Source of the DNA: Macrostomum lignano
Taxonomy: Eukaryota
Reading direction: 5' to 3'
NCBI GenBank assembly: GCA_002269645.1
Contig: NIVC01000573.1
Location: 372,001-436,000, forward strand
Length of the DNA: 64,000 nt
This document shows, piece by piece, positions 838 to 61,430 of the stretch (position 1 is the first letter of the stretch; each line of letters opens with the position of its first letter). The position numbers and the translations under genes were made by a program. The notes under the pieces were generated by a model that saw only the letters and a list, made by a program, of their open reading frames with translations, was not told the origin of the DNA and did no database searches.

Positions 838-3260
838 CTAGACTGCCCCGTCAGTCGGGATCGTGTCCAGGTACATCGGCGACTGCAGCGGCGGGTTCAC
901 CGGCAGAGACGCGGCGGAGCTCGGGCAGCAGGCCGTCAAGAGCCTCTTCGTCAGGCTGCGGCTGTCAGCGGAATCCGTGCGGCTGCGACTGCGGCTTCGG
1001 AATATCTGCGGAGAATCGTGGGTTCGGGTGCGGGGTTGCCAAGGACAGCTTTAAGAGGCTGGATTTCGCCGAAATATCTAGTCCATATACTAAAAATGGT
1101 CTGTCGGTATCTATCTATCTATCTAGGTATGCGATCGATTTTAGCAAAAATACTACATGTATTTTAAATACCTACGGAGATAAAAAGTTTTCATTCTTTC
1201 AGCAAAAAATGGTTACTGCTTTAGATAAGAGGCAGACCCAATGTTCACCTTTTGATATGTTGTGCCTTTCTCATAGCTCTATTCACATTCAAAGCCTTCG
1301 TTTAGAAAATTAGAATTCTATGTCGATTTTTTTATTCTACGTACATTTCCTGTACCTGAAAATCAGAAAAATTATGAATCTTTTTTATCATCTCTGCTAC
1401 ACAATATTGTTACACAGCCAGCTAAGATTGATAAAATAGATTCATAAAACCAATGAGTCGAGCCGTGCCATTTCAATGCTTTTTAGGCTGTGTTTGCTCA
1501 TGATGTACACGGGGTGTGTAGCGGCCCTGAATTCTAAGCTTCAGGCATGTACAGTAGACTCTGTGCCTTGGGGACAACCCACGACCAGTTTTCTTGTACA
1601 CAAGCCCGGCCCTGGAAGGGAGCCATTGCAGAACCCCTGCAATGTGACCTTAATGATCTGAGATGAGGTTGGCAGCAGTGGTGACGGCAGCAAGGCTCAC
1701 CTGCAGCAGGTGAAGACAGCCGCCGCAGCAGATGGCCGCATAGGAGAGGCAAACCAGCAGGCCGAACTGGGTGACCAGCGGCAGGGCGGCCACCAGGCCG
1801 AACTTGGCCAGGTCCAGCAGCTGGTTGAGGCTCTCCTGAACTCCGTACACCCGGCCACGCTCCCGCTCCGGCACGGTCTCCAGGAACAGCTGGGTGATGC
1901 TGAGGTCGGCCAGCCACAGCCCCGTGCGCGACACCACGATGCCCGCCAGCAGCAGCGCCACCGACGCGTAGGAAGACGGTCGATCGCCACCGCTGCCGTC
2001 GGTGCCGTTGCCGCCAGCGGCGCCTCCGACATCGAAGGTGAACAGCATCAGCTCGGTGAACTGCGGCTGCGTAACGTTGATCTGCTGGACGGGCGGCGCG
2101 GCCGTCAGGTCGAAGGGGCTGCCTGGCGCGAAGACGGACAGCACGCAGGGCAGGAGGCTGAGCGCCTGCAGAACGAAACCGGTCTGGCCGGAGCTCAGCA
2201 GGCCGAAGCGGGACCGCAGCGCCGGGAACAGCAGGGTGCCCAGCAGGCCGAACACGGCCGACACGGCCAGGCAGCCGGACAGCACGGCCGCTGGCACCGC
2301 CTGTGAGTACACGTAGCCAGTGGTGACATTGTCGAAGCCCAGCACGGTCAGGTACAGGCTGGACAGGGCCAGGCCGGCGCAGAACACGGGCTGCCGGAAG
2401 TACAGCTGCCAGCCCGCCACCTGGTCGCGAATTTGACCAACTATTCGGGTCCGCAAACGGGAATCGGCGGCGGGTGCGGCGGCGGGGGCGGCGGCGGGTG
2501 CAGCGTCATCATTGGCGTCCTCAACAAGAACGTCGGCGTCCTGCTGAGCCGCTTCAGCCGGCTGGTTTTTCTCAGCCAGCCGCGGCACCGAGGCGTAGAT
2601 GTGGCCCAGCAGCGTCCACTCGACGCACATGGAGACGAGGTTCCAGCAGGCCACGGTGATGGCCGAGGCCAGCGGCGACACGAAGGTGGTCACCATGCCG
2701 AATAGCAGCGGCGCCAGCACCTGGCAGGACAGGTCGATGCGGCGCAGGTGCGCGGTGGCCGTCGCTAGCAGCTCTTTGTCCGAGCCGCAGATGGCGACAA
2801 TCCAGTCCTTGGAGACGCAGATCTTCAACGCTACGCTGGCCAGCTGAGCGAGCAGGGCCGTCGCCACCACCAGCGCCTTGGCGGCCTCGAAGGCGGCAGC
2901 GGCCTGAGCGGTCACCAGGCCGGAGAGAATCAGGCAGACGATCACAGCGCACACGCTGACGAGGCCGTTCTGCATCACCAGGCTGGTGCGAGCGGCCAGC
3001 AGCCGGGGCGACCGGTCGATGAGGTTGCCGATGGCCGAGCCCAGCGAGAACACGCCGAGGCTGCAGGAGAGGCCGTACACCGCCGTGAGCGACAGCGAGC
3101 CGGGCGAGATCTGCACCAGGTAGACGCCGACCGCGAAAGTCCACATGCGGTCGCCCCAGGAGGACAGGCAGAACAGGGCGTACAGCAGGCGGCGGGGGCT
3201 GCAGCTGCAGCCGCTGCAGCAGGGGGACGGCTGGAACGGGAGAGGTGAGGGAGAGCGCAT
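838..3260 (-). CDS. SLC40A1: Ferroportin (FPN1/IREG family MFS iron exporter); 2 coding exons 3260-1701 and 1005-838, about 575 aa
   Basis: Family motifs SSWGDRMWTFAV, GNLIDRSPRL, QNGLVSVC, LRRIDLSCQVLAP, LYLTVLGFDNVTTGY, RTGLWLADLSITQLF and QESLNQLLDL. Donor CAG|GTGAGC at 1701/1700 and phase-0 acceptor TTCTCCGCAG|ATATTC at 1006/1005 give a 56-codon last exon ending TAG at 840-838. Confidence 0.93.
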
Positions 3261-24200: not shown

Positions 24201-26099
24201 TTTGACCCACACGGACTTGAACTTGGCCGGTCATCTGTCACCTGGCCAAACACTTGCCCGGACCCAGTACACAACTTCTGGTTCCCGGAGCTCGACCGTC
24301 GTCTCTTGATCCCCGGATCGCGACTCCCCCCATCATCATCAAGGACGAATTCCCCCGGTCGTCAGCAGCGAACATCAAGATTAAGAACATCACCTGCTAG
24401 CTATTTGCGAAGACTGTGACATCATCATCCCGGGCCTACAGCTGCGAAGCACTAAGCGGATTCGGTCACTTACCTGGTCTCCGGCTGTTGAGTTTCTGAT
24501 TGCAGGTTGGGTGAGAGGCTACCTAGACTTGCTTGATCGGGTGTTCCTTTGTCTGTCCCCTATTTCAGTAGCTGGATTAGGCGCACACTTTTGTTCATTT
24601 TGTTCAGTAGTGCTGTTATCTAGGCAGAAATCACTTAAAAATTACTGTTAGTAGTCTGATTGCGCCCATTCTGTCTGAAGTGTGAAGTGATTCAGGGAGA
24701 AGGTAAATCTGACAGCTATTTTTATCGGTTTTATTTCTTTGTTCGCCGATGGCTCAGATGAGTAGCTAAGCTAGTAGGCACCGGTCGCAGTGGACCAATG
24801 GCAAGGCAGTTCTCAGTCGATCAATCTATCAAATCAGTTATCAAAGTTGCCAATAGTGCAGAATCGGCGCTAGAGATGTACTTTTTGAACTCTAGATTGG
24901 CCAAGCGGCTCAGGTTAATGAATCATGCGGTCTCTGATGTTCGAGTTAGCCTATCATCAGCGCTAGGAGAGGCTGGTTGGCGCGTTGAAGGCCAAAAGTA
25001 CATTTCTCGTATTTAGCAATGTAATAGTACATAGTAGCTACCCCATTGTCTCGCCACTGCAAGAATCCCCTGCACAAGTCCCCTCTGTACCTGCATGGCC
25101 AATGCGATCAAGTCCCAGCAGAGTCCCCTCCCTTATCATCGGCTATGACTTCGAGATTGACAGCAAAGACACTAGTTGGCAGGTAAGTGCTAAGCCCCCT
25201 CTAGTCGGAAGCCCGATTTCGAAAGTCCCGGTTTGGTGAGCCAGGACGCACGGGCTGGTGGCAGCGGGTTAGTTAATCTGCGGATTAGCTGATCTCTACC
25301 TTCGAAATTCTCCCTGCTTGTCTCTCGCTGTCCCTCTCTTAGCTATAGGACCTAGACTGCTCGCCACAGATCAAGCTACCATGGGGCTGACCATCTGACA
25401 GGAGTGGGGGGCCAGGACTCTAATGGATTCATTTCTGAGACCTGAGGCCCGAAGGCTTCCCGCAAGGGGGCAAGGGGCTTCCAGCAAGGGAAGAAGGTGA
25501 CGTGATGTGATGGGGAGCACCCCAACTGCCAGCCGGAAAACTGCCAGCCGACAACTGCTAGCCGAAAACTGCCAGTCGACAACTGCCAGTCCACAAGTTC
25601 TAGCTAATTGAATCTACTGTAGCCTACTTATTAGCTAAGTAAGCACGAAACTGTTTGGCTAGCAAAAGGCTTGTGGGGTAGCATTAAATGTCGCCCTTCC
25701 CTTCCCTATTTTTTCAGATTTCCATTAGAAGTATATATGTGAAGGAGAAGGCATTCTGTAATGCCTATTGTAAATATTTTTGTATTGAAAGTTCATTTAC
25801 TTTATTATTAAATTTGCGATTGCGATTGCTATATGACGCAATCCTAGAAAAGTCTATTGAATTACTTTACTTAAATAAAGCTTTCAAAGAAAGAGCAAAG
25901 GCTACCTAAAATACGAAATTTGAACCAAGATGTTCGTGCAGGAGCCGAAAGTTGCCAGCTCTGATAATTCGCGCACATGCCGCACAAGCTTACAAACTTT
26001 TGTTGGCGATAAAACAAAACAACTTGTAGCTGGGCTAACTGATTTCTGTAACAATGCAACCTGTTTTTGCTGAATAATTAACTAATTTAATAAATAGTA

Positions 26100-27409
26100 C
26101 GAGGGTCACTCAGAAAGTCTTTAGCCTGAGTAGGATCCACGAGACGTAGAAGCATGAAATTTGTCTATGGTAAAGACCAACTTTTAAAAGTATCGCAGCA
26201 AAAATTTTAAACAGAAGCAGCCACTTTTGAGTCCACTGCAGCGAGTTAAAGTCAGTTCACCCCCTGAGTTCTTCAATTCAACAATGAAGCTGGAAAATCG
26301 CGACTTCAGAGCAATGATGTACCTGCACTTCAAGCAAGGCAAGTCGCCGGCCGAATCGTATCAAACTTTACAGAACGTTTTCACCCATGTATGTCCTTCA
26401 TACGCAACCGTCAAAAACTGGTTCGCTGAGTTTCGCCGAGGTCGAGAAAGCCTCGAAGATGAACATCGATCCGGGAGACCCTGTGACGCAGTGACTCCAG
26501 AAAATATCTGCGCTGTGTCCAGCATGATTGCCGCTGACCGGCGAGTGACCTACCAGCAGATCCAGCAGGAGATCGGTATTGGATCGGGGAGTGTGCACGC
26601 CATTATGCACGAACACCTTGGAGTGCGGAAGCTGGCTTCCCGGTGGATCCCCCATCAGCTGTCGGACGTGCAGAAGGACACCAGGGTGGCTTGGTGCCGA
26701 TTCATGCTGCAGAAATTCGAATCCGGGACCAGCCGGCGTATCTGGGACATCCTCACGGGCGATGAGACCTGGATTTATCAATACGACCCCGAAAGCAAGC
26801 GCCAGTCAGCCATGTGGACCTTTGGAGACGAGGACAGCCCCACAAAGTTTCGACGCAGCCGGAGTGTCGGCAAGCAGATGGTGGCCTGTTTCTTCATGCG
26901 CACTGGGCATGTGGCTTCCGTTTCACTTGAAGATCGCCAGACAGTCACCGCTGACTGGTACACAACGGTTTGCCTGCCCAAGGTCTTTTCTGCTGTGAGC
27001 CAGAGGCGCCCAAGGTGCGGAATGCGTGGGGTGCTTCTGCACCACGACAACGCCAGCGCGCACACGGCGGCTCAAACTCTGGAGTTTCTGGCTGACTGTG
27101 GGGTCCAGCTGATGACTCACCCTGCTTACAGTCCAGACCTGGCACCGTGCGACTTTTTTCTGTTTCCGAAGTGCAAGGAGATTCTGAAGGGCCAGGTTTT
27201 TTCTTCACCGGAAGAAGCTGTAAATGAGTTCAAAAACATCATCGAGGAGCTCCGGGATGAGGATTGGCGGCATTGCTTCGACAGCTGGTTTCACAGGATG
27301 CAAGCCTGTATCAATGCCGGTGGAGAGTATTTTGAGCACTTGTAGTCGTTTTTTAGTTCATTTGTTGCTGTTTTCTTGTTCAGGCTGAGAACTTTCTGAG
27401 TGACCCTCG
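26100..27409 (+). mobile_element. Full-length mariner DNA transposon, 1310 bp
   Basis: 30-bp TIRs (27/30 identical, CGAGGGTCACTCAGAAAGT...), TA duplication at 26098-26099 and 27410-27411, and a single intact transposase ORF. Confidence 0.97.
26284..27345 (+). CDS. Mariner transposase, DD34D, 353 aa, uninterrupted
   Basis: Motifs WIPHQL, TGDETW, LLHHDNA and HPAYSPDLAPCDFFLF, with 34 residues between the second and third Asp. ATG at 26284. Confidence 0.97.
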   Translation: MKLENRDFRAMMYLHFKQGKSPAESYQTLQNVFTHVCPSYATVKNWFAEFRRGRESLEDEHRSGRPCDAVTPENICAVSSMIAADRRVTYQQIQQEIGIGSGSVHAIMHEHLGVRKLASRWIPHQLSDVQKDTRVAWCRFMLQKFESGTSRRIWDILTGDETWIYQYDPESKRQSAMWTFGDEDSPTKFRRSRSVGKQMVACFFMRTGHVASVSLEDRQTVTADWYTTVCLPKVFSAVSQRRPRCGMRGVLLHHDNASAHTAAQTLEFLADCGVQLMTHPAYSPDLAPCDFFLFPKCKEILKGQVFSSPEEAVNEFKNIIEELRDEDWRHCFDSWFHRMQACINAGGEYFEHL

Positions 27410-29251
27410 TAAACAAAGCTGTCTACTTTCTAGCCAGATCCTGAATGCCATATTGCGGAAGGTGTAGTATACGCCGGACGCCGGAAATCCGGCGTACAAA
27501 CGTTTTGTCTGGCGTACATCTAGCGTTTTTCTCGCTGGCAGTTTTCTCGGCTGGCAATTGTCGACTGGCAATTGTCGACTGGCAGTTGTCGGCTGGCAAT
27601 TGTCGACTGGCAGTTGTCGGCTGGCAATTGTCGACTGGCAGTTGTCGACTGGCAATTGTCGACTGGCAGTTGTCGGCTGGCAATTGTCGACTGGCAGTTG
27701 TCGGCTGGCAGTTGTCGGCTGGCAATTGTCGGCTGGCAATTGTCGACTGGCAGTTGTCGACTGGCAATTGTCAACTGGCAGTTGTCGGCTGGCAGTTTTC
27801 CAGCTGGCAGTTTTCTCGGCTGGCAATTGTCAGCTGGCAGTTGTCGGCTGGCAGTTGTCGGCTGGCAATTGTCGGCTGGCAATTGTCGGCTGGCAATTGT
27901 CGGCTGGCAGTTGTCGGCTGGCAGTTGGGGTGGACGTGATGTGATGCACCGCAGTCTCCTAGCTCCCATATGCCACAGAAAAGACAATTGCGCATTGGAG
28001 GGCATCCGCGGTTTGCAACGATCGAGAGATGTGTCTCTGAAAGTAGAAATTTTATCCAAATTTTACTTTTAAAAAATTAAATCGGAGAATGATTTGCTTT
28101 TAATCAACTTTTTTTGCGTTTCAGTTTGTCTGATAAGCTTCAAATTGGAAGTACAAATATGATTACATGTAAATAATTAAGGTTTCAAGTGCTATATGCA
28201 TCGCTAATATACATATACATAATAATATACATAAGCTTATAGGACAAGTTCCACAAGGTCCAAGGAGGATTAATACAAACGTAATTAGACTACATGTAAG
28301 TGTACTTGAAGTACATAAGATACACGCGTATAGCATGTACGGCACAGGAATCCATAGACTGACCAAGACTCGGGCTTAAGGGAGTCGAGAGTCCAAAACA
28401 AAGAATTGTCACCACCTGGTCAGAAACTTAGAGTTTATGTCGTTGTCTTAATCCACAAATATTAGACCCATACATGTAAGGGACGCAGTAGTATAGATTA
28501 AATCGTTTTTTAATTTAAATGTACATATAAATCAGGTAATGACTCTAGCCTGCAACAAAATGAAGACGGGGGACCGGCCGCTTTTACTTGAACCGATTCG
28601 TTATTTTATTTACACGAATCGTGAGCCATAACTGCAGTCGCGAGCGGAAACTCTGCTGCTAAAAAATGAGCAATCGTTATAGCTCTGTACAATATCACTG
28701 CTCAAGCAGCAGCCACCTTAATGCAAATTCTGCAGCTGTCTCACGAGACCAAAATAATTTGCGCGTCTAAACTCAGCTGCGGGTGAGGTGCAGCCCCGGC
28801 CCCTACAATGATGGGGGTCGCAATCGAAACGAGATGAAAAAATAACAACCAGAGACTATGGAGTTCGGACTCTGTGTGAGTTTTCCGTCTTTAACTATTC
28901 TAAACTCGGTTGAGCACATGGTCGCTAGCTGAATTGCTTATGACAGGCCAAGTCATTGTCTATGCATGAAGGCTCTATGGGTGATGAGGGAGAGAGGCTG
29001 ACAATGCGCCGAATAGCTTGAGTACACACAAGAGAACTTGGCTTGACAGCAAGCAGCCTCTCTTCAGAAGCACATGCCGTAGCAGATCTCTTCTCTATTC
29101 ACGTGTCTGAGGCAAGGCTAATTTCTGCCCTGCTCAAATATATCAAATATAAAACCCTTCCAGTTTCTAGCTGAGGACTGAGGCGAGGCCCTTCTTAGAA
29201 CTGCTCTATAAGCTGAAGGCAGATTAACAATTTCAACGCACTCCGCACAAA

Positions 29252-29978
29252 ATGAGCAAACTGGCACTCTACGGTCTGCTGCTTCTGGCGCTGGTAGCAG
29301 CCACACTGGCTGCTCCGGCTTACGACGATGCGGAGAGCTCCGACGGTGAGTCTGAGACATGATGATAGCTCTAACAAATGGAAGCTGAAGCTAGGACCAC
29401 TTTCACGATTCCACATGGAAACGAATTCCAGATCTTCAATGCCGCATGCGACCCGAAAAGCCTCTCTATCCGGCCCTCGGGGTCCTTTTGAAACTTCACA
29501 AAAGCAATCCGGCCCGCTCAAAGTTGCGTCTCTTCTCAGCTCTCCTCTCTCTTCATCGATTTCATTCCTCCTCTCGTCTCGTCTCGTCTCTTCACCTTCC
29601 CTCATCTCTCCTTTCTCCCATGCATCTCTTTTCTCTCCCAGTTTGCCGACCCCTGCCCCAAGAGTAATTTTTCCTCTACAACTGGATTCGAAATTGAATG
29701 TACTTGAAAGTCTCAACCGCGGACACCCGGTTTTGCAGACGAGGACACGGCCGACTGGCTGGATGACCTGATTGACAAGCGCGGCTTTGGAGCCGCCGGT
29801 CGCAAGGGTCACTTCGTCTCTGGGCCGCACAGGTAGGGCCAAAATTATCCCTTCTCCTTGTAAGGGAAATTTAAATTTATATAAATATAAATTTCAACTG
29901 CTGTGTGCCGATTTCAGGAGGTGCCTGCACTACAAGTTCGGCAAGCACGGCCTGTACTGCGCCAAGTATTCCAGCTAG
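29252..29978 (+). CDS. Secreted prepropeptide A, 82 aa; exons 29252-29345, 29739-29832, 29918-29978
   Basis: MSKLALYGLLLLALVAATLA-APAYDDAESSDDEDTADWLDDLID-KR-GFGAAGRKGHFVSGPHRRCLHYKFGKHGLYCAKYSS*. Splice sites G|GTGAGT, TTTTGCAG|, AG|GTAGGG and ATTTCAG| join in frame (phases 1, 2). GC-rich codon usage matches the other genes. ATTAAA at 30149. Confidence 0.85.
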
Positions 29979-30861
29979 AAGTGCTCAGGGCAGCCAGGAA
30001 TAGATATTTTGTTCTTTTATGCTCTCCTATAGCTGCATGCTTAATTTTTCTTATCGATTTTTTTATCTTGGTTTCCTCACTGAAATTCTTTATATAACTT
30101 TCTCTTTTTTAAATAACAATAGACAGCATTCATCTTAGCTGTTCAGATATTAAAATAACAAATACATAAACTAATTTGAAATGTGTATTTATCTGAAGAA
30201 GATAACTACTTCAAAGTTACTTCTTAGTACATGTAGTACACTAGATTTGTTACTATACTAAGTCATGGAGAGATATGCATGGCAAATGATGTTTAAAGCA
30301 AAAAAGCATCAATCCCCGAAAGCCAGCTGTCTAGCCTAAGGCATCAGCATCCCCTGTGAGCTTTTGGCTTCAAAAGCCGCTCTTTACGAGTATGCCATGG
30401 CTTAACCCAAACTCTCCCTTTGATTTACCTTTGGCTTGGCCTACTAATAACTTCCAATTGGCTCTTGGCATCTCAACAACCCCCCACCCCCAACAGCCAC
30501 AGGATTTCAGTAATTCCCCTATGAGCCTTGACAGCTCAGAAATTCTTCACATTTTGGTTGACATGGTGTTTCTTTTTCTTTCTATGAGTTGTCTTCACCT
30601 TAAAAACGCTTAAAAATGAAAAGGCTAATGAAAGACCCATGAAACGATAAAAACAAGCTAACTAACATAACTTTTGTTTTTTGTTTTAAGGTTAGTACAG
30701 GTTTGGTTGGGTTAGGTTTTAGGTTAGGTTTTTCTTAGGTTAGGTTTATGCTCAATAATCTTCGCGTGTTCAGAAATACTTGAGTAAATAGATCAGTTTT
30801 ACTCAAACCTTCTTGATAAATGGGCAGGTTTGAGTTAGCAGTCTGGCATGCAGCCGCGGCT

Positions 30862-33800
30862 TCAGGCGCAGCTCCCGGTGCTCAGCTGCCGGATCGCCAC
30901 GAGTCCCTCCTCGCCGTTGCGCCCGTCGTTCGAGATGCCAACGCAGCCACTGCCGGCGCAGAACGAGCCGCCGCCGCCGCCAGTGTTTTCGTAGGTCGCA
31001 GCCCCCGCTCCGCCGCTGTAGCCACCGCCTCCGCCGCCGGCACCGCAGCTGCTTGTGAAGCCAAAGGCACCGCCGCCGCCACCACCAAAGCCGCCGTCGG
31101 TGCCGGCGTAGCCGCGGCCGCCGACCCATCCTTCGGCGCGGCCGCCGCCGCCCTCGCCGCACCTGTCCTCACGTCGAGTCGAGTTGGCGCCGCTCAGCCA
31201 GCCGGCACCTGGGCCGCCGTAGTAGCCACTGGCAGCAGAGTTCGAAGGCCCGGGCTGGCCGAGAACGCCTCCCGGAGGGTTCTTGTCGGGGTGCGTGCCG
31301 GTACCGTTCTCTCCAGCTTGTCCCGAATAGGCTGCAGGGGCGAAGGGGACAATCATGGTTGCCTGAGTCTTGGCAGAGTGTAAAAATCGAGCCAGAAGGA
31401 CTCAGGCTCAACTCCAGAGGGATGGCTCTCAAAGTACCGTGTGTACTTGTCTGACAATGAGAAAGCTATCGCATTTGTACGCTGGGTGTTGTGGTCTGCG
31501 TGCGTGCTGCAGTCTGCATGTGTGCTGCAGTCTGCATGTTTGCTGCAGTCTGCATGTGTGCTGCAGTCTGCATGTGTGCTGCAGTCTGCATGTGTGCTGC
31601 AGTCTGCATGTGTGCTGCAGTCTGCATGTGTGCTGCAGTCTGCATGTGTGCTACAGTCTGCATGTGTGCTGCAGTCTGCATGTGTGCTGCAGTCTGCATG
31701 TGTGCTACAGTCTGCATGTGTGCTGCAGTCTGCATGTGTGCTGCAGTCTGCATGTTTGCTGCAGTCTGCATGTGTGCTGCAGTCTGCATGTGTGCTGCAG
31801 TCTGCATGTGTGCTGCAGTCTGCATGTGTGCTGCAGTCTGCATGTGTGCTGCAGTCTGCATGTGTGCTGCAGTCTGCATGTTTGCTGCAGTCTGCATGTG
31901 TGCTGCAGTCTGCATGTGTGCTGCAGTCTGCATGTGTGCTGCAGTCTGCATGTTTGCTGCAGTCTGCATGTGTGCTGCAGTCTGCATGTGTGCTGCAGTC
32001 TGCATGTGTGCTGCAGTCTGCATGTGTGCTGCAGTCTGCATGTTTGCTGCAGTCTGCATGTGTGCTGCAGTCTGCATGTGTGCTGCAGTCTGCATGTGTG
32101 CTGCAGTCTGCATGTGTGCTGCAGTCTGCATGTTTGCTGCAGTCTACATGTTTGCTGCAGTCTGCATGTGTGCTGCAGTCTGCATGTTTGCTGCAGTCTG
32201 CATGTTTGCTGCAGTCTGCATGTGTGCTGCAGTCTGCATGTTTGCTGCAGTCTACATGTTTGCTGCAGTCTGCATGTGTGCTGCAGTCTGCATGTGTGCT
32301 GCAGTCTGCATGTGTGCTGCAGTCTGCATGTGTGCTGCAGTCTGCATGTTTGCTGCAGTCTACATGTTTTCTGCAGTCTGCATGTGTGCTGCAGTCTGCA
32401 TGTGTGCTGCAGTCTGCATGTTTGCTGCAGTCTGCATGTGTGCTGCAGTCTGCATGTGTGCTGCAGTCTGCATGTGTGCTGCAGTCTGCATGTGTGCTGC
32501 AGTCTGCATGTGTGCTGCAGTCTGCATGTGTGCTGCAGTCTGCATGTTTGCTGCAGTCTGCATGTGTGCTGCAGTCTGCATGTGTGCTGCAGTCTGCATG
32601 TGTGCTGCAGTCTGCATGTGTGCTGCAGTCTGCATGTTTGCTGCAGTCTGCATGTGTGCTGCAGTCTGCATGTGTGCTGCAGTCTGCATGTGTGCTGTAG
32701 TCTGCATGTGTGCTGCAGTCTGCATGTTTGCTGCAGTCTGCATGTGTGCTGCAGTCTGCATGTGTGCTGCAGTCTGCATGTGTGCTGCAGTCTGCATGTG
32801 TGCTGCAGTCTGCATGTTTGCTGCAGTCTACATGTTTGCTGCAGTCTGCATGTGTGCTGCAGTCTGCACGTGTGCTGCAGCTTACAAAGGAAAGGACAAG
32901 ACGAGCCGCCGCTGCCCCCAGCAGCCAGGTACAGAAACCCGTCGCCGGTGCCGTACACGAAGGAGCCGCCGCCCCCGGCCCCACCGCCATTGGAAACTCC
33001 GGGTTGGCCGCTCTGCCCGACCACAATGGACAGGTGCGTGCCCGCGGCGAGGCTGAAGTTGCCAGCCATCCAGGCGCCTTTGTTCGCTGCTTTGCCCCCT
33101 GAAGAGCCGCCTTTGGCGCCCAACGCCTCGATTCGGTAGCAGCCGGCGACGGTCACCACGGCCTGCTGGACAGAGCCGTTCCGCCCGGTGCCGCTCACTG
33201 CAAGTGAAAATTATCACCATCACCCTTAAGCACTTCTAGTCAGCCGAAGCAGCAAACAATGTTACATGTACTTTTGTTTGATTTAAAGAAGTAAAAATGA
33301 ATTTAGTCGCAGTCTGAATTTTCCCTGCCGCTTCCTCCATCAGCAACCAAAATAGTTTCATGTTGTGGTCGAATACCGACTCACCATTTTACTCACCATT
33401 GAAATTCATTTTAGAGCAATTTTATGATTTCAGAGCCGTTTTACCCACTGGCCACCATTGGACTTGATTTCAGAGCCGTTTTACCCACTGGCCACCATTG
33501 AACTTGATTTCAGAGCCGTTTTACCCACTGGCCACCATTGGTCTTGATTTCAGAGCCGTTTTACCCACTGGCCACCATTGAACTTGATTTCAGAGCCGTT
33601 TTACCCACTGGCCACCACCATTGGACTTGATTTCAGAGCCGTTTTACCCACTGGCCACCATTGAACTTGATTTCAGAGCCGTTTTACCCACTGGCCACCA
33701 CCATTGGACTTGATTTCAGAGCCGTTTTACCCACTGGCCACCATTGAACTTAATTTCAGAGCCGTTTTACCCACTGGCCACCACCATTGGACTTGATTTC

Positions 33801-35031
33801 AGAGCCTGTTTACTCACCATTGGACTTGATTTCAGAGCCTGTTTACTCACCATTGAACTTGATTTCAGAGCCGTTCACCGCCGTAAAAAGCGAGCTCGAG
33901 GCAGCTGAAAATGATGACGATGAAAATTAACTCGCGTCAGTTCCGTAGTATAATGTGTAGACAGAGCGCATATCATTTGCAACACGAAGTCAAAGTCCTG
34001 AGCGCCACAGCTCATACACACGCTCACGCAGGGCCTGAAAGACCTGACTTTCTAATCTTAAGGCATGTCCACTCCCTGTGCCTTGTGGGTTGGCCCTCAT
34101 GGCTGTGACCATCGAGCTGCTGCTCTGCCCCCTCACACACCCTCAAGCTGCTCTCCACATTCAGAAATCGTTCTCAATGGTTACATTTTTTATCATGTAA
34201 CGCAATAAAACCTGAGATTTAAGCCTGAGCGTCTATAAAATTTACAAAATCTCACTTGGCTCGACAGCCATTCGCAGCTGCTCAATCCTTTCTCCAAAAT
34301 CTTCTGCCAGCCACAGCTCATCGCCCGGCTCGGCTCCCAGTTGCCTGGTCACGTGACTGCCGGCCGGTCCAGGCGACTGCAGCAGCCGCAGCACCCGGCA
34401 GAGGCTGCGGTTGCCGCTGAGGACGGCGGCGACGCACCCGGACAGCTGGCTGCAGCGATGGGCGCAGTAAATGCGCGACATGTTGAGCTCTGAGAAGCTG
34501 AGCAGCTCGCTGCTGCTTGAGTTGTCCAGCTGGACTGGCTTGGAGAGTTTGAACAGCCGCTCTGGGGCTTCCGCTGCCAGCAGCTGGCTTGCGGACTCGA
34601 CCAGGAGAATAAAAAGCGGCACTGGCGGCGGTAGAGCAGAGTGAATTGATGAGCTCGTTGCCAAGGCAGTCAGCAGGCACTCAGCAGGTAGTCAGCAGGC
34701 AGTCAGCAGGCAGTCAGCAGGCAGTCAGCAGGTAGACAGCAGGCAGTCAGCAGGCAGTAAGCAGGCACTCAGCAGGTACTCAGCAGGCAGTCAGCAGGCA
34801 GTCAGCAGGCAGTCAGCAGGCAGTCAGCAGGCAGTCAGCAGGCACTCAGCAGGTACTCAGCAGGCAGTCAGCAGGCACTCAGCAGGCAGTCAGCAGGCAG
34901 TCAGCAGGCAGTCAGCAGGCAGTCAGCAGGCACTCAGCAGGTACTCAGCAGGCAGTCAGCAGGCACTCAGCATGTAAAGACAGACAAGTTAGGCACATAA
35001 GCAGCATTTGCTTACCGGCTAGCCAGAACAT
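30862..35031 (-). CDS. Secreted protein with PAN/Apple-like domain plus ALK/LTK-type glycine-rich domain, 387 aa; exons 35031-35016, 34621-34256, 33197-32886, 31331-30862
   Basis: Signal peptide MFWLA|VPLFILLVESASQLLA. PAN-like Cys pattern CAHRCSQLSGC...LCRVL. Gly-rich domain motifs GCYRIEALGAKGG, LSIVVGQSG, GGGGSFV, LAAGGSGG, GGFGGGGG, GGGGGYSGG and GGGGSF. All introns are phase 1 GT-AG and the frame stays open. Confidence 0.82.
31495..32880. repeat. 18-bp minisatellite (GCTGCAGTCTGCATGTGT), about 77 copies, intron 3 of the PAN/Gly-rich gene
   Basis: Tandem periodicity; begins immediately after the GTAAG donor on the - strand. Confidence 0.97.
33425..33870. repeat. 40/43-bp minisatellite (GATTTCAGAGCCGTTTTACCCACTGGCCACCATTGGACTT), intron 2 of the PAN/Gly-rich gene
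   Basis: About 11 tandem units, some with an extra CAC. Confidence 0.93.
34665..34970. repeat. 11-bp minisatellite (GCAGTCAGCAG), intron 1 of the PAN/Gly-rich gene
   Basis: Tandem periodicity. Confidence 0.93.
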
Positions 35032-35520
35032 TCCGACATGAATTCCAGTCCTTAATCAGCTTAGATTCCCAGAGGCTTTCAGTCTCAAAAATTCGCTGGC
35101 TTCAGCTCAGACCCGCAGGTATTTTATGTATTCATTTCTATCCAGAAGTTGCCATGGCAACAATCACAAACAGCCAAACTCTATGTAAAGATGAATGGGG
35201 AAAGCTATCGTGGAAAATCCAGCAGAAATCGATGATTTGATCAACGCTTTTTCCCCCGAGTCCTCAACATCAAGGACGCCGACCCGCGGCTTGTTCAGCC
35301 CAGGCTATCTTCTTCAAGCCATCTTTAAGCGCTTGGTGAACGCTTTGCTGCCCCCATGGCGCTCCTCTGCTATCTGATGCCGCTTGCTAGACAGAGGAAA
35401 CCCATGGGTATTTATAGTTATTTCATTGTTTCGCTTTTTCATGAGGCCAATCTGCTCAAAACGGTTTAAATTATACATTTTAGCAAAAAAACATCGTCTA
35501 TTTTTAACAAAATAGCGTTA

Positions 35521-38500
35521 GTGACTTGTTACAGTCCTATTACTGCATGGTTAGTGACTTGTTACAGTCCTATTACTGCATGGTTAGTGACTTGTTACAG
35601 TCCTATTACTGCATGGTTAGTGACTTGTTACAGTCCTATTACTGCATGGTTAGTGACTTGTTACAGTCCTATTACTGCATGGTTTAGTGACTTGTTACAG
35701 TCCTATTACTGCATGGTTAGTGACTTGTTACAGTCCTATTACTGCATGGTTAGTGACTTGTTACAGTCCTATTACTGCATGGTTAGTGACTTGTTACAGT
35801 CCTATTACTGCATGGTTAGTGACTTGTTACAGTCCTATTACTGCATGGTTTAGTGACTTGTTACAGTCCTATTACTGCATGGTTTAGTGACTTGTTACAG
35901 TCCTATTACTGCATGGTTTAGTGACTTGTTACAGTCCTATTACTGCATGGTTTAGTGACTTGTTACAGTCCTATTACTGCATGGTTTAGTGACTTGTTAC
36001 AGTCCTATTACTGCATGGTTTAGTGACTTGTTACAGTCCTATTACTGCATGGTTTAGTGACTTGTTACAGTCCTATTACTGCATGGTTTAGTGACTTGTT
36101 ACAGTCCTATTACTGCATGGTTTAGTGACTTGTTACAGTCCTATTACTGCATGGTTTAGTGACTTGTTACAGTCCTATTACTGCATGGTTTAGTGACTTG
36201 TTACAGTCCTATTACTGCATGGTTTAGTGACTTGTTACAGTCCTATTACTGCATGGTTTAGTGACTTGTTACAGTCCTATTACTGCATGGTTAGTGACTT
36301 GTTACAGTCCTATTACTGCATGGTTAGTGACTTGTTACAGTCCTATTACTGCATGGTTAGTGACTTGTTACAGTCCTATTACTGCATGGTTAGTGACTTG
36401 TTACAGTCCTATTACTGCATGGTTAGTGACTTGTTACAGTCCTATTACTGCATGGTTAGTGACTTGTTACAGTCCTATTACTGCATGGTTAGTGACTTGT
36501 TACAGTCCTATTACTGCATGGTTAGTGACTTGTTACAGTCCTATTACTGCATGGTTAGTGACTTGTTACAGTCCTATTACTGCATGGTTAGTGACTTGTT
36601 ACAGTCCTATTACTGCATGGTTAGTGACTTGTTACAGTCCTATTACTGCATGGTTAGTGACTTGTTACAGTCCTATTACTGCATGGTTAGTGACTTGTTA
36701 CAGTCCTATTACTGCATGGTTAGTGACTTGTTACAGTCCTATTACTGCATGGTTAGTGACTTGTTACAGTCCTATTACTGCATGGTTAGTGACTTGTTAC
36801 AGTCCTATTACTGCATGGTTAGTGACTTGTTACAGTCCTATTACTGCATGGTTAGTGACTTGTTACAGTCCTATTACTGCATGGTTAGTACTTGTTACAG
36901 TCCTATTACTGCATGGTTAGTACTTGTTACAGTCCTATTACTGCATGGTTAGTGACTTGTTACAGTCCTATTACTGCATGGTTAGTGACTTGTTACAGTC
37001 CTATTACTGCATGGTTAGTGACTTGTTACAGTCCTATTACTGCATGGTTAGTGACTTGTTACAGTCCTATTACTGCATGGTTAGTGACTTGTTACAGTCC
37101 TATTACTGCATGGTTAGTGACTTGTTACAGTCCTATTACTGCATGGTTAGTGACTTGTTACAGTCCTATTACTGCATGGTTAGTGACTTGTTACAGTCCT
37201 ATTACTGCATGGTTAGTGACTTGTTACAGTCCTATTACTGCATGGTTAGTGACTTGTTACAGTCCTATTACTGCATGGTTAGTGACTTGTTACAGTCCTA
37301 TTACTGCATGGTTAGTGACTTGTTACAGTCCTATTACTGCATGGTTAGTGACTTGTTACAGTCCTATTACTGCATGGTTAGTGACTTGTTACAGTCCTAT
37401 TACTGCATGGTTAGTGACTTGTTACAGTCCTATTACTGCATGGTTAGTGACTTGTTACAGTCCTATTACTGCATGGTTAGTGACTTGTTACAGTCCTATT
37501 ACTGCATGGTTAGTGACTTGTTACAGTCCTATTACTGCATGGTTAGTGACTTGTTACAGTCCTATTACTGCATGGTTAGTGACTTGTTACAGTCCTATTA
37601 CTGCATGGTTAGTGACTTGTTACAGTCCTATTACTGCATGGTTAGTGACTTGTTACAGTCCTATTACTGCATGGTTAGTGACTTGTTACAGTCCTATTAC
37701 TGCATGGTTAGTGACTTGTTACAGTCCTATTACTGCATGGTTAGTGACTTGTTACAGTCCTATTACTGCATGGTTTAGTGACTTGTTACAGTCCTATTAC
37801 TGCATGGTTTAGTGACTTGTTACAGTCCTATTACTGCATGGTTTAGTGACTTGTTACAGTCCTATTACTGCATGGTTTAGTGACTTGTTACAGTCCTATT
37901 ACTGCATGGTTTAGTGACTTGTTACAGTCCTATTACTGCATGGTTTAGTGACTTGTTACAGTCCTATTACTGCATGGTTTAGTGACTTGTTACAGTCCTA
38001 TTACTGCATGGTTTAGTGACTTGTTACAGTCCTATTACTGCATGGTTTAGTGACTTGTTACAGTCCTATTACTGCATGGTTTAGTGACTTGTTACAGTCC
38101 TATTACTGCATGGTTTAGTGACTTGTTACAGTCCTATTACTGCATGGTTTAGTGACTTGTTACAGTCCTATTACTGCATGGTTTAGTGACTTGTTACAGT
38201 CCTATTACTGCATGGTTAGTGACTTGTTACAGTCCTATTACTGCATGGTTAGTGACTTGTTACAGTCCTATTACTGCATGGTTAGTGACTTGTTACAGTC
38301 CTATTACTGCATGGTTAGTGACTTGTTACAGTCCTATTACTGCATGGTTAGTGACTTGTTACAGTCCTATTACTGCATGGTTAGTGACTTGTTACAGTCC
38401 TATTACTGCATGGTTAGTGACTTGTTACAGTCCTATTACTGCATGGTTAGTGACTTGTTACAGTCCTATTACTGCATGGTTAGTGACTTGTTACAGTCCT

Positions 38501-41500
38501 ATTACTGCATGGTTAGTGACTTGTTACAGTCCTATTACTGCATGGTTAGTGACTTGTTACAGTCCTATTACTGCATGGTTAGTGACTTGTTACAGTCCTA
38601 TTACTGCATGGTTAGTGACTTGTTACAGTCCTATTACTGCATGGTTAGTGACTTGTTACAGTCCTATTACTGCATGGTTAGTGACTTGTTACAGTCCTAT
38701 TACTGCATGGTTAGTGACTTGTTACAGTCCTATTACTGCATGGTTAGTGACTTGTTACAGTCCTATTACTGCATGGTTAGTGACTTGTTACAGTCCTATT
38801 ACTGCATGGTTAGTGACTTGTTACAGTCCTATTACTGCATGGTTAGTGACTTGTTACAGTCCTATTACTGCATGGTTAGTGACTTGTTACAGTCCTATTA
38901 CTGCATGGTTAGTGACTTGTTACAGTCCTATTACTGCATGGTTAGTGACTTGTTACAGTCCTATTACTGCATGGTTAGTGACTTGTTACAGTCCTATTAC
39001 TGCATGGTTAGTGACTTGTTACAGTCCTATTACTGCATGGTTAGTGACTTGTTACAGTCCTATTACTGCATGGTTAGTGACTTGTTACAGTCCTATTACT
39101 GCATGGTTAGTGACTTGTTACAGTCCTATTACTGCATGGTTAGTGACTTGTTACAGTCCTATTACTGCATGGTTAGTGACTTGTTACAGTCCTATTACTG
39201 CATGGTTAGTGACTTGTTACAGTCCTATTACTGCATGGTTAGTGACTTGTTACAGTCCTATTACTGCATGGTTAGTGACTTGTTACAGTCCTATTACTGC
39301 ATGGTTAGTGACTTGTTACAGTCCTATTACTGCATGGTTAGTGACTTGTTACAGTCCTATTACTGCATGGTTAGTGACTTGTTACAGTCCTATTACTGCA
39401 TGGTTAGTGACTTGTTACAGTCCTATTACTGCATGGTTAGTGACTTGTTACAGTCCTATTACTGCATGGTTAGTGACTTGTTACAGTCCTATTACTGCAT
39501 GGTTAGTGACTTGTTACAGTCCTATTACTGCATGGTTAGTGACTTGTTACAGTCCTATTACTGCATGGTTAGTGACTTGTTACAGTCCTATTACTGCATG
39601 GTTAGTGACTTGTTACAGTCCTATTACTGCATGGTTAGTGACTTGTTACAGTCCTATTACTGCATGGTTAGTGACTTGTTACAGTCCTATTACTGCATGG
39701 TTAGTGACTTGTTACAGTCCTATTACTGCATGGTTAGTGACTTGTTACAGTCCTATTACTGCATGGTTTAGTGACTTGTTACAGTCCTATTACTGCATGG
39801 TTAGTGACTTGTTACAGTCCTATTACTGCATGGTTTAGTGACTTGTTACAGTCCTATTACTGCATGGTTTAGTGACTTGTTACAGTCCTATTACTGCATG
39901 GTTAGTGACTTGTTACAGTCCTATTACTGCATGGTTAGTGACTTGTTACAGTCCTATTACTGCATGGTTAGTGACTTGTTACAGTCCTATTACTGCATGG
40001 TTAGTGACTTGTTACAGTCCTATTACTGCATGGTTAGTGACTTGTTACAGTCCTATTACTGCATGGTTAGTGACTTGTTACAGTCCTATTACTGCATGGT
40101 TAGTGACTTGTTACAGTCCTATTACTGCATGGTTAGTGACTTGTTACAGTCCTATTACTGCATGGTTAGTGACTTGTTACAGTCCTATTACTGCATGGTT
40201 AGTGACTTGTTACAGTCCTATTACTGCATGGTTAGTGACTTGTTACAGTCCTATTACTGCATGGTTAGTGACTTGTTACAGTCCTATTACTGCATGGTTA
40301 GTGACTTGTTACAGTCCTATTACTGCATGGTTAGTGACTTGTTACAGTCCTATTACTGCATGGTTAGTGACTTGTTACAGTCCTATTACTGCATGGTTAG
40401 TGACTTGTTACAGTCCTATTACTGCATGGTTAGTGACTTGTTACAGTCCTATTACTGCATGGTTAGTGACTTGTTACAGTCCTATTACTGCATGGTTAGT
40501 GACTTGTTACAGTCCTATTACTGCATGGTTAGTGACTTGTTACAGTCCTATTACTGCATGGTTAGTGACTTGTTACAGTCCTATTACTGCATGGTTAGTG
40601 ACTTGTTACAGTCCTATTACTGCATGGTTAGTGACTTGTTACAGTCCTATTACTGCATGGTTAGTGACTTGTTACAGTCCTATTACTGCATGGTTAGTGA
40701 CTTGTTACAGTCCTATTACTGCATGGTTAGTGACTTGTTACAGTCCTATTACTGCATGGTTAGTGACTTGTTACAGTCCTATTACTGCATGGTTAGTGAC
40801 TTGTTACAGTCCTATTACTGCATGGTTAGTGACTTGTTACAGTCCTATTACTGCATGGTTAGTGACTTGTTACAGTCCTATTACTGCATGGTTAGTGACT
40901 TGTTACAGTCCTATTACTGCATGGTTAGTGACTTGTTACAGTCCTATTACTGCATGGTTAGTGACTTGTTACAGTCCTATTACTGCATGGTTAGTGACTT
41001 GTTACAGTCCTATTACTGCATGGTTAGTGACTTGTTACAGTCCTATTACTGCATGGTTAGTGACTTGTTACAGTCCTATTACTGCATGGTTAGTGACTTG
41101 TTACAGTCCTATTACTGCATGGTTAGTGACTTGTTACAGTCCTATTACTGCATGGTTAGTGACTTGTTACAGTCCTATTACTGCATGGTTAGTGACTTGT
41201 TACAGTCCTATTACTGCATGGTTAGTGACTTGTTACAGTCCTATTACTGCATGGTTAGTGACTTGTTACAGTCCTATTACTGCATGGTTAGTGACTTGTT
41301 ACAGTCCTATTACTGCATGGTTAGTGACTTGTTACAGTCCTATTACTGCATGGTTAGTGACTTGTTACAGTCCTATTACTGCATGGTTAGTGACTTGTTA
41401 CAGTCCTATTACTGCATGGTTAGTGACTTGTTACAGTCCTATTACTGCATGGTTAGTGGCTTGTTACAGTCCTATTACTGCATGGTTAGTGGCTTGTTAC

Positions 41501-42773
41501 AGTCCTATTACTGCATGGTTAGTGGCTTGTTACAGTCCTATTACTGCATGGTTAGTGACTTGTTACAGTCCTATTACTGCATGGTTAGTGACTTGTTACA
41601 GTCCTATTACTGCATGGTTAGTGACTTGTTACAGTCCTATTACTGCATGGTTAGTGACTTGTTACAGTCCTATTACTGCATGGTTAGTGACTTGTTACAG
41701 TCCTATTACTGCATGGTTAGTGACTTGTTACAGTCCTATTACTGCATGGTTAGTGACTTGTTACAGTCCTATTACTGCATGGTTAGTGACTTGTTACAGT
41801 CCTATTACTGCATGGTTAGTGACTTGTTACAGTCCTATTACTGCATGGTTAGTGACTTGTTACAGTCCTATTACTGCATGGTTAGTGACTTGTTACAGTC
41901 CTATTACTGCATGGTTAGTGACTTGTTACAGTCCTATTACTGCATGGTTAGTGACTTGTTACAGTCCTATTACTGCATGGTTAGTGACTTGTTACAGTCC
42001 TATTACTGCATGGTTAGTGACTTGTTACAGTCCTATTACTGCATGGTTAGTGACTTGTTACAGTCCTATTACTGCATGGTTAGTGACTTGTTACAGTCCT
42101 ATTACTGCATGGTTAGTGACTTGTTACAGTCCTATTACTGCATGGTTAGTGACTTGTTACAGTCCTATTACTGCATGGTTAGTGACTTGTTACAGTCCTA
42201 TTACTGCATGGTTAGTGACTTGTTACAGTCCTATTACTGCATGGTTAGTGACTTGTTACAGTCCTATTACTGCATGGTTAGTGACTTGTTACAGTCCTAT
42301 TACTGCATGGTTAGTGACTTGTTACAGTCCTATTACTGCATGGTTAGTGACTTGTTACAGTCCTATTACTGCATGGTTAGTGACTTGTTACAGTCCTATT
42401 ACTGCATGGTTAGTGACTTGTTACAGTCCTATTACTGCATGGTTAGTGACTTGTTACAGTCCTATTACTGCATGGTTAGTGACTTGTTACAGTCCTATTA
42501 CTGCATGGTTAGTGACTTGTTACAGTCCTATTACTGCATGGTTAGTGACTTGTTACAGTCCTATTACTGCATGGTTAGTGACTTGTTACAGTCCTATTAC
42601 TGCATGGTTAGTGGCTTGTTACAGTCCTATTACTGCATGGTTAGTGACTTGTTACAGTCCTATTACTGCATGGTTAGTGACTTGTTACAGTCCTATTACT
42701 GCATGGTTAGTGACTTGTTACAGTCCTATTACTGCATGGTTAGTGTCTTGTTACAGTCCTATTACTGCATGGT
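35521..42773. repeat. Homogeneous 33-bp satellite (GTGACTTGTTACAGTCCTATTACTGCATGGTTA), about 220 copies, 7.25 kb
   Basis: Near-identical head-to-tail units with no spacers. Rare 34-bp (+T), 32-bp (-G) and A>G variants. Confidence 0.99.
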
Positions 42774-45789: not shown

Positions 45790-50727
<4,938 letters not shown>

Positions 50728-59640: not shown

Positions 59641-61430
59641 TATATAATTACATTCTTTTTTTGCTCCCCAACATACAAACTTTCTTATATATTATTTTTT
59701 ACTCATTACACCTGGCTTGCAGCAAGTGGCCAGAGTTATAGCCATTGGCACAATTGTAGCTTTCTGCATATAGTATGCCATGTGTCTAAGGGCTGTGTAT
59801 AGATGAACAGTCTTTCACTGACTGAGGGAACCGCCATATCCACTTAGAGTTAGTTGATTAGTATAGTATGTTAACATCTTGTATTAGACAGATTAGAAGT
59901 ATAATACAATTGAACGAGCAATTCGGAACCTGTTAAGGGCCATTGCAAAACTCCATTGTAGAGGGGCCTTTTAGTTAAGGCTTTTTGCTTTCAATTCACT
60001 GCAACTATACAGTACTCTGCAAGGTATTCCACTGGATGGGAGATAGATGGGACACCTGGAGGGTGGGGATACCACCTAGTAGTGTCTAATATTATAGCCT
60101 AAAAATGCCTTTTGACACTGTCTATTTATTAAATTAGGGCAACATAGTTTAGACTCTAGTCTGGCTACAATAGTAAAATGCCTTTGCTTTGGTCTAGGAG
60201 CCTAATATTAAAATTAAATATTTAAGACAAGAAATGGTTATAGTTTAAAAAATGGAGATAAGATAGATAAAATGATAAAATCTCTAATTTTTTTAATTTC
60301 AAATCAAATGATAATTGGAAAGTATAAAGAATATAAAAAATTATAGTATAAGCTCATATAATTACTTTAATAAATGAATAAAACTGCTTGGCATTTGCTA
60401 GAAGCCTAAAACTTAGGCCTAAACCTTTTAAAATGTTTTTAATAAGCAGATTAGGTTTATAACATAGTTGTATTTATAAACATTTACTTGCCTATTTTAT
60501 CCCTTGATGGCTTGAAATTTTTAGATAGGACCCTAATGCATATTAGAAAGTTTTCCAAATCTTGTCTTGAAAATTTAAAGAAATTTGAGATTTTTTGAGA
60601 TAAAAAATTTTGGGACCTTTTCTTGAATCTTGTTCTTCAAACCATTTTATGTGTATATAAAGTAAACAATATGATAAATAGACAACATTTGTCTATCATA
60701 TTTACTTAACCTAATTTACTATATAGTTTTTTGTTTAAGTTATTCCCTTGTAAAGTATATAGGCCTTTAATCAATTTTTTTAGACATTATATAAAGTAAA
60801 TGATCATAACAAATATTAGTCAATTTGTATTGACCTTTTGAATAGGTTTATACCAAAATCATTTGATTTTTATTAAGTCATTTTGTTAATAAATGAAGTT
60901 TGTCTAAAAAGTAGAAAAATGTCTAATTCATATAATTATTTTTTTTCTTATCCAAAAGCACTAGCACTTGTCAATCTGTATATTAAATTATATGACTAGT
61001 ATCAATAATTTTCATCTGAACTTTTATTGACCTTTTACAGTGAATCTATATATTTTCTATGTTTTATTGAAATAATTTCTTTACCTTCTCTTAAAAGATA
61101 TAATATACATAATATATACAATATAGAAAATAATATATTGGAAAGAACAATTAATTAAGAATAACTTAAGCATATGATAAATGTAAAGACAATAAATTAA
61201 ATGAAAGATTTGTAGATATAAATTGGCCTATCGTCTATTTTTTTCTCTTATTTTATTATTCAACCTAATTTGCCCCTCTCAGAATTGTACTCATCTCAAT
61301 TCACTGCATGTCCAGCTGATCAATTTGGGCTATGCACATTGTGCATTCTTAGCTAAATACATTCCTTGTTACACCATCTGAGACTTTTGATTGGCTCTGC
61401 AACGCTCATATAGTACTAATAAAAGTAGTG

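Follow-up and report, generated by a model that had tools for sequence, protein, structure and literature searches.

A split gene of Macrostomum lignano for a small secreted precursor with an acidic propiece and a basic two-cysteine peptide that may serve host defence

The window analysed here is a 64,000-nucleotide stretch of the Macrostomum lignano genome, and at 29252-29978 on its forward strand there is, very probably, a three-exon gene for a secreted precursor of 82 residues that is processed at a Lys-Arg (KR) site. On direct reading, coding exon 1 (29252-29345) begins with the ATG at 29252 and comprises codons 1 to 31 plus one nucleotide, which encode the signal peptide (29252-29311) and the start of an acidic propiece, with the donor GTGAGT following at 29346. 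Intron 1 (29346-29738; 393 nt, phase 1) is CT-rich, runs from GTGAGT to TTGCAG, and has the same boundaries in the two other genomic copies of the gene. Coding exon 2 (29739-29832) holds the remainder of the propiece up to 29776, the KR site (29777-29782), and residues 47-62 of the basic peptide, including a G-RK sequence. Intron 2 (29833-29917; 85 nt, phase 2) runs from GTAGGG to TTTCAG and interrupts the first Arg codon of an RR doublet, so that coding exon 3 (29918-29978) reads (R)RCLHYKFGKHGLYCAKYSS, with Cys65 at 29922-29924, Cys77 at 29958-29960, and the stop codon TAG at 29976-29978. With 31, 31, and 20 codons, respectively, the three exons splice into a coding sequence (CDS) of 249 nt for the 82-aa protein MSKLALYGLLLLALVAATLAAPAYDDAESSDDEDTADWLDDLIDKRGFGAAGRKGHFVSGPHRRCLHYKFGKHGLYCAKYSS. 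An earlier note on this DNA had proposed an 82-aa frame with junctions at 29345/29739 and 29832/29918, and this gene model proved exact to the base, both introns being of the GT..AG type.

A TATA-like element, TATAAAA (29148-29154, forward strand), lies 98-104 nt upstream of the ATG and may act as the core promoter. The element is kept in the paralogous copy, where the surrounding 5′ flank is 94% identical, and no ATG occurs between it and position 29252. Downstream, the first 90 nt after the stop codon have diverged between copies, unlike a conserved block at ~30120-30260 that contains ATTAAA (30149-30154, forward strand), a candidate poly(A) signal ~170 nt past the stop. The GC3 of the CDS is 0.77, compared with a GC content of 0.29-0.49 in the introns and flanks and with a GC3 of 0.80-0.88 in neighbouring real genes of the same window (ferroportin ORF, 0.88; DEAD-box ORF, 0.80). 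A search with Rfam found no RNA family within the window.

An identical protein is present in GenBank as PAA80608.1 (UniProt A0A267G3H0, BOX15_Mlig024363g1) under the name "hypothetical protein", and its locus places the window at NIVC01000573.1:372001-436000 of assembly GCA_002269645.1. The gene had been described as invisible to the ORF track, which is true of a plain ORF scan but not of the GenBank annotation. The scan instead reports an antisense ORF of 215 aa (29195-29842, reverse strand) and an intron-reading ORF of 147 aa (29328-29771, forward strand). We rejected both as genes: the corresponding frames (232 codons antisense and 157 codons intron-reading) are interrupted in the paralogue, so that only the split gene is preserved and the long ORFs are spurious. 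Annotation of this assembly was derived solely from RNA-seq, by StringTie/TACO and de novo transcriptome assemblies with ORFs called by TransDecoder, and the boundaries of its transcripts were set by trans-splicing and poly(A) reads (PMC5730564). Because the annotation comes from transcripts alone and the deposited CDS has exactly the splicing described above, a transcript is indirectly supported. The transcript-based GenBank model thereby provides an indirect answer to the two objections that had been raised in advance against the gene, namely that it might have no transcript or be spliced differently.

The rest of the window contains genes, a transposable element, and many tandem repeats. 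At 1650-3260 on the reverse strand, an uninterrupted 536-aa ORF with a GC3 of 0.88 matches ferroportin (Pfam FPN1, E 9e-123) and is apparently a single-exon iron-exporter gene. An intact 372-aa ORF for a mariner/Mos1-type transposase (HTH_48, Transposase_1, DDE_3) occupies 26227-27345 within an element that spans 25523-27927. It is flanked by inverted arrays of the 14-bp unit CAACTGCCAGCCGA, the left one (25523-25604) with ~5 copies and the right one (27547-27927) with 27. The element, with ends that would be asymmetric and carry the repeats, may have been active recently. On the reverse strand, exon-like ORFs at 30860-33200 and 34242-34664 contain an ALK/LTK-type glycine-rich domain (PF12810, E 1e-6), with 77 copies of an 18-bp minisatellite (31494-32880) interrupting them. 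Up to 10 kb from the peptide gene, GenBank annotates no gene here, although the other copies match this region at 96-99% identity. Very long artefactual ORFs arise from 219 tandem copies of a 33-bp unit (99% matches), which form a 7.2-kb array at 35517-42773, and more than 20 further minisatellite arrays with periods of 11-40 bp lie in introns and intergenic DNA across the window. Exons of a DEAD-box helicase (DEAD and Helicase_C) are found at 46704-48186 (reverse strand), together with 47395-47634 and 48187-49170, with minisatellites of 31 and 30 bp packed into the flanking or intronic DNA. In both of the other copies this helicase (642 aa) is annotated next to the peptide gene, and synteny is therefore kept. 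Finally, a 404-aa ORF at 61428-62642 (forward strand) is extremely Gln/Ala-rich, with CAG repeats and no Pfam match, and may belong to a Q-rich nuclear protein as one of its exons or be an artefact of the repeats.

The two other annotated copies of the peptide gene (PAA54900.1 at locus L001 and PAA78047.1 at locus L002) have the same splice sites and encode a protein that is 98% identical, and the frame and canonical splice sites are intact in 3/3 genomic copies. Extra copies fit the redundancy known for the DV1 genome (PMC5730564). Between the window copy and its paralogue the exons are 97-99% identical, with 6 substitutions in 249 nt, a single one of which falls in the 94 nt of exon 2, while exon 3 has two synonymous changes and no replacement. 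Four of the six are synonymous and the other two are replacements, of which A5P affects the signal peptide and A36P the propiece, leaving the 36-residue basic peptide unchanged. The pN/pS ratio of 0.16 (Fisher P = 0.03) from this comparison is modest evidence that the CDS is under purifying selection. The first 320 nt past the stop codon are 82% identical to the paralogue, and because intron 1 is 97% identical despite a value of 85% for intron 2, divergence along the locus is uneven. The interval 30837-31944 is 98.8% identical between copies, against the 82-85% of intron 2 and the 3′ flank. Over ~1.8 kb (window 28800-30622), L001 and L002 differ from each other in only two alignment columns and each is ~11% different, gaps included, from the window copy. 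This pattern points to duplications of two different ages, or to an older homeologue with assembly redundancy added to it. With each exon as query, tblastn found only the gene itself, and no further paralogue, in the window and the 20-kb flanks of the three copies.

The encoded precursor is built, from N to C terminus, of the leader MSKLALYGLLLLALVAATLA, the propiece APAYDDAESSDDEDTADWLDDLID, KR, and the 36-mer GFGAAGRKGHFVSGPHRRCLHYKFGKHGLYCAKYSS. The leader is a hydrophobic stretch of 20 aa (GRAVY +1.92) with small residues at -3 and -1 (T-L-A|A), called as a signal peptide by eye. The propiece (residues 21-44; 24 aa) contains nine Asp and two Glu residues, for a charge of about -11, and is separated by Lys45-Arg46 from the 36-mer, which starts with Gly. 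Within the 36-mer are seven Lys/Arg residues (four of them Lys), four His, two Cys, seven Gly, and three Tyr, with no acidic residue; its charge is +7.1, its pI 10.2, and it is Gly/Pro-rich, its mean hydrophobicity (GRAVY -0.61) and its helical hydrophobic moment (0.14) both being low. All of the counts in the earlier note are borne out by these figures (leader length, propiece length and acidic residues, the KR site, and the basic, His, and Cys residues of the 36-mer). Past the signal peptide, each of the 11 acidic residues lies ahead of each of the nine basic ones, an order for which the chance is 1/167,960 (6e-6), and this complete segregation of acid and base is far beyond chance.

Two further dibasic sites, the G-RK at residues 52-54 and the RR at 63-64, are present where they had been described. 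They had been taken to offer, in the manner of a neuropeptide precursor, alternative products that included a cyclic C-terminal peptide. The sites do exist, but cleavage at RR yields the 18-aa CLHYKFGKHGLYCAKYSS, in which the ring keeps an AKYSS tail that no basic site would remove. They are also no more frequent than composition alone would give (P ~0.1-0.3 by shuffling): shuffled versions of the 36-mer have a mean of 1.17 adjacent basic pairs, with P = 0.33 for at least two pairs, P = 0.22 for at least one Gly-dibasic sequence, and P = 0.12 for both features. In prohormone processing KR is the doublet of choice and RK the one least often cut, with prosomatostatin as an example of its use, and convertases disfavour a Cys immediately after a dibasic doublet (RR|C). 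From these preferences, KR46 is the sole confident site, RK54 is possible, and RR64 is doubtful.

The fold of the precursor was predicted with AlphaFold2 from the single sequence, with no alignment, giving a low-confidence model with a mean pLDDT of 61 that rises to ~66-74 over residues 51-80. The model has helices at residues 5-19 (in the signal peptide) and 38-46, and strands at 55-59, 63-70, and 72-79. In this low-confidence model, strands 63-70 and 72-79 are antiparallel, with a turn at Gly71 and Cys65 facing Cys77, a register that fits a disulfide staple. Judging from the limits of the strands, one face of the predicted hairpin would carry Leu66, Tyr68, Phe70, and Tyr76 and the other His67, Lys69, and His73. 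A Foldseek search of the PDB with the model returned nothing at E <= 0.001, and its top matches were unrelated folds.

Sequence searches identified no relative beyond M. lignano itself. Of 5.8 billion clusters screened by a word-indexed search, the M. lignano cluster alone was recovered (5 candidates, 1 match at E <= 10), and an exhaustive phmmer search of 1.84 billion representative proteins returned only the protein itself. The collections searched appear to contain no other Macrostomum transcriptomes, and because they hold hardly any other Macrostomum data, the absence of homologues is weak evidence. We accordingly use "orphan" to mean that no relative is detectable outside the genus, not that the gene is specific to the species, and even in this sense the status is weakly established from the databases. 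The only Pfam match to the precursor or the 36-mer at E <= 10 was a sub-threshold one to Anophelin (PF10731). We did not assign the protein to this family: the score is 13.8 bits against a gathering cut-off of 27, and the match covers only the signal peptide and the acidic stretch. A search of PDB sequences with the 36-mer gave one chance match, to a PHD finger (E = 3). The likeness of the 36-mer to a zinc ribbon or PHD finger (CxH...HxxxC) was dropped because it scores at chance level and a secreted peptide would be oxidised.

We read the mature peptide as an extracellular cationic effector of host defence, antimicrobial or toxin-like, rather than as a neuronal signal, and give this reading a probability of roughly 0.4. 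It is preferred because a single charge-balanced acidic block precedes a single basic block and because the cues for a neuropeptide stand at chance level. In such an effector, the N-terminal signal peptide (residues 1-20, cleaved after T-L-A) would route the product into the secretory pathway, where the 24-residue propiece, with its charge of -11, would neutralise the basic C-terminal part during folding and transport. An enzyme of the furin or prohormone-convertase type would cleave after Lys45-Arg46 and a carboxypeptidase would remove KR, so that the released product would be the oxidised 36-mer GFGAAGRKGHFVSGPHRRCLHYKFGKHGLYCAKYSS, with a charge of +7 and four His. If RK54 were also used, the products would be a 28-mer and GFGAA-amide. 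The C-terminal half of the 36-mer would form a β-hairpin held by a Cys65-Cys77 disulfide.

An acidic block, KR, and a basic block in this order form the classic layout of amphibian preprodermaseptins and brevinins, of Hydra arminin, and of defensin propieces. The M. lignano precursor has the charge-neutralising arrangement of cationic host-defence peptides, with +7.1 set against -11.2 and KR between them. The helical type of host-defence peptide is a poor match, because the Gly/Pro-rich composition, the GRAVY of -0.61, and the hydrophobic moment of 0.14 indicate that the 36-mer is not a classical amphipathic-helix antimicrobial peptide. The amphipathic sorting of the hairpin (Leu/Tyr/Phe/Tyr against His/Lys) appears in a model with a pLDDT of ~61-74, and the existence of a G-RK sequence that would give an amidated pentapeptide speaks against an effector. 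In a more specific and still more tentative form, the 36-mer or the 28-mer could be the first gene-encoded host-defence peptide from a free-living flatworm: a His-rich, disulfide-stapled β-hairpin with a charge-neutralising propiece, belonging to a Macrostomum-restricted family with no sequence relatives.

A precursor of neuropeptides or peptide hormones is a close rival to the host-defence effector, though on our assessment an unlikely one. In this reading, a PC2-type enzyme of neurons or endocrine cells would cut at KR46, at RK54, and perhaps at RR64 to give receptor ligands, namely GFGAA-amide plus either the 28-mer or GHFVSGPH and the disulfide-cyclised CLHYKFGKHGLYCAKYSS. In favour of this reading, the precursor is small and has, besides its signal peptide and acidic spacer, three dibasic sites (KR46, RK54, RR64), one of them after Gly; a signal sequence combined with multiple dibasic sites is also what was used in screening for planarian prohormones (PMC2953531). 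A PC2 homologue is present in the M. lignano nervous system (PMC4490696), making such processing feasible. Lineage-restricted orphans are common among flatworm prohormones. Cyclic peptides that end the precursor at its extreme C terminus and are freed at a dibasic site are known from somatostatin and allatostatin C. However, the internal dibasic and Gly-dibasic sites are expected from composition (P = 0.12-0.33), and the two sites concerned combine the least-used doublet with a disfavoured Cys directly after RR. No neuropeptide family was matched in Pfam at E <= 10, neither feature of luqin precursors was found, and GFGAA-amide is not known to resemble any flatworm peptide motif. A lone acidic block offset by a lone basic block is also more typical of precursors of effector peptides.

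We consider it improbable that the 36-mer is an exocrine product, whether a secretion of the reproductive glands (prostate or seminal fluid) or a component of adhesive, eggshell, or mucus, in which it would be structural or would manipulate the partner. Small secreted orphan genes with fast turnover are typical of the reproductive glands of Macrostomum (PMC7336406), but the mature peptide is unchanged between copies, unlike the products of fast reproductive evolution, although the time span of this comparison is short. The composition, rich in Gly, Tyr, Lys, and His, recalls small basic adhesive and eggshell proteins, but repeats of the kind found in structural proteins are lacking. The gene ids also do not occur in Table S11 of PMC7336406, a complete list that maps all in situ probes published for M. 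lignano onto the transcriptome and in which id numbering may differ between transcriptome versions; this absence suggests that the gene has so far remained outside published in situ screens. Neither the gene ids nor the peptide strings were found in the texts of published papers, the ids were not found among the rows listed in supplements of M. lignano expression papers, and our literature search found no single-cell atlas of M. lignano. Least probable of all is a young or de novo transcript whose ORF is transcribed and annotated but untranslated or inconsequential, which would fit the lack of homologues among 5.8 billion clustered and 1.84 billion representative proteins and an annotation pipeline that takes any transcript with a TransDecoder ORF (PMC5730564), but is opposed by the ordered signal/acidic/KR/basic layout (6e-6 for the charge order alone), the gene-like GC3 of the codons, the frame and splice sites kept in every copy with a pN/pS of 0.16 (P = 0.03), and the weakness of the orphan status itself in databases with almost no other Macrostomum data.

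Finding an orphan secreted peptide that databases already list as a hypothetical protein is nothing out of the ordinary for the M. lignano genome. M. lignano is a flatworm model with methods for transgenesis, RNAi, and in situ hybridisation, in which innate-immune effectors and much of peptide signalling are uncharted, and a prepropeptide gene that is compact, clearly bounded, and equipped with a short promoter region makes an easy test case. If the peptide were antimicrobial, it would open flatworm mucosal defence to genetics; if neuronal, it would add one more orphan ligand. The locus also illustrates how ORF scanning overlooks short multi-exon peptide genes and reports long spurious ORFs on the same DNA.

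Several known systems resemble the precursor in part. The planarian spp/npp prohormone genes (Collins et al, 2010; PMC2953531) likewise encode short secretory precursors that have dibasic sites and a Gly that could serve for amidation, and are lineage-restricted and elusive to ORF scanning, but they share no peptide motif with the M. lignano gene, in which dibasic sites are not enriched beyond composition. Precursors of luqin/RYamide are small and neuropeptide-like, with a Cys pair near the C terminus as seen here. In luqin precursors an RF/RW/RY-amide peptide follows directly after the signal peptide and the two Cys are 10 residues apart (PMC7041311). Membership of this family was rejected on both features, with residues 21-44 forming the acidic APAYDDAESSDDEDTADWLDDLID and no RF/RY/RW-Gly motif anywhere in the precursor, and with a Cys65-Cys77 spacing of 11 rather than 10. 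At the level of sequence, somatostatin and allatostatin C were rejected as well, there being no match to their Pfam profiles and no FWKT-type core in the ring LHYKFGKHGLY. Peptides of the somatostatin or allatostatin-C kind form a ring at the extreme C terminus behind a dibasic site; in the M. lignano precursor RR, a doubtful cleavage site, precedes Cys65, and the ring lies near the C terminus but is followed by AKYSS. The Drosophila sex peptide (Acp70A) is, like the 36-mer, a secreted peptide of 36 residues with a C-terminal C-x11-C disulfide loop, an analogy that would favour an exocrine product. Acp70A has no acidic propiece, shows no sequence similarity, and comes from an unrelated lineage, and unless the gene turned out to be expressed in the prostate, the likeness is a coincidence of numbers.

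Further parallels in architecture come from host-defence peptides. Precursors of Hydra arminins are also taxon-restricted orphans in which a signal peptide and an anionic N-terminal part precede a released cationic C-terminal peptide, but arminins have no cysteines, unlike the M. lignano peptide, and share no sequence similarity with it. Thanatin, arenicin, and tachyplesin differ in loop size and precursor organisation and likewise show no sequence similarity, but they are also short and strongly basic, with a flexible N-terminal part and a disulfide-closed C-terminal β-hairpin, which for the M. lignano peptide is predicted only. The amphibian preprodermaseptin and brevinin-esculentin ("Rana box") precursors have, as here, a signal of ~20-22 aa, then ~20 aa of acidic spacer with Lys-Arg at its end, and one cationic peptide of 10-46 aa, and the ranid peptides also carry a single disulfide loop at the C-terminal end. 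The loop of ranid peptides has ~5 residues between the Cys compared with 11 here, where a 5-residue tail follows it, and in contrast to the amphibian peptides the 36-mer is Gly/Pro/His-rich with low helical amphipathicity. We rejected membership of the amphibian superfamily, given that neither the signal nor the spacer sequence is shared and no homologue is found outside M. lignano. With no sequence shared with preprodermaseptins and brevinins, arminins, or thanatin, the M. lignano gene is not a member of any of these families. The architecture alone is alike, and because the amphibian phylum is unrelated, any likeness between the two would be convergent.
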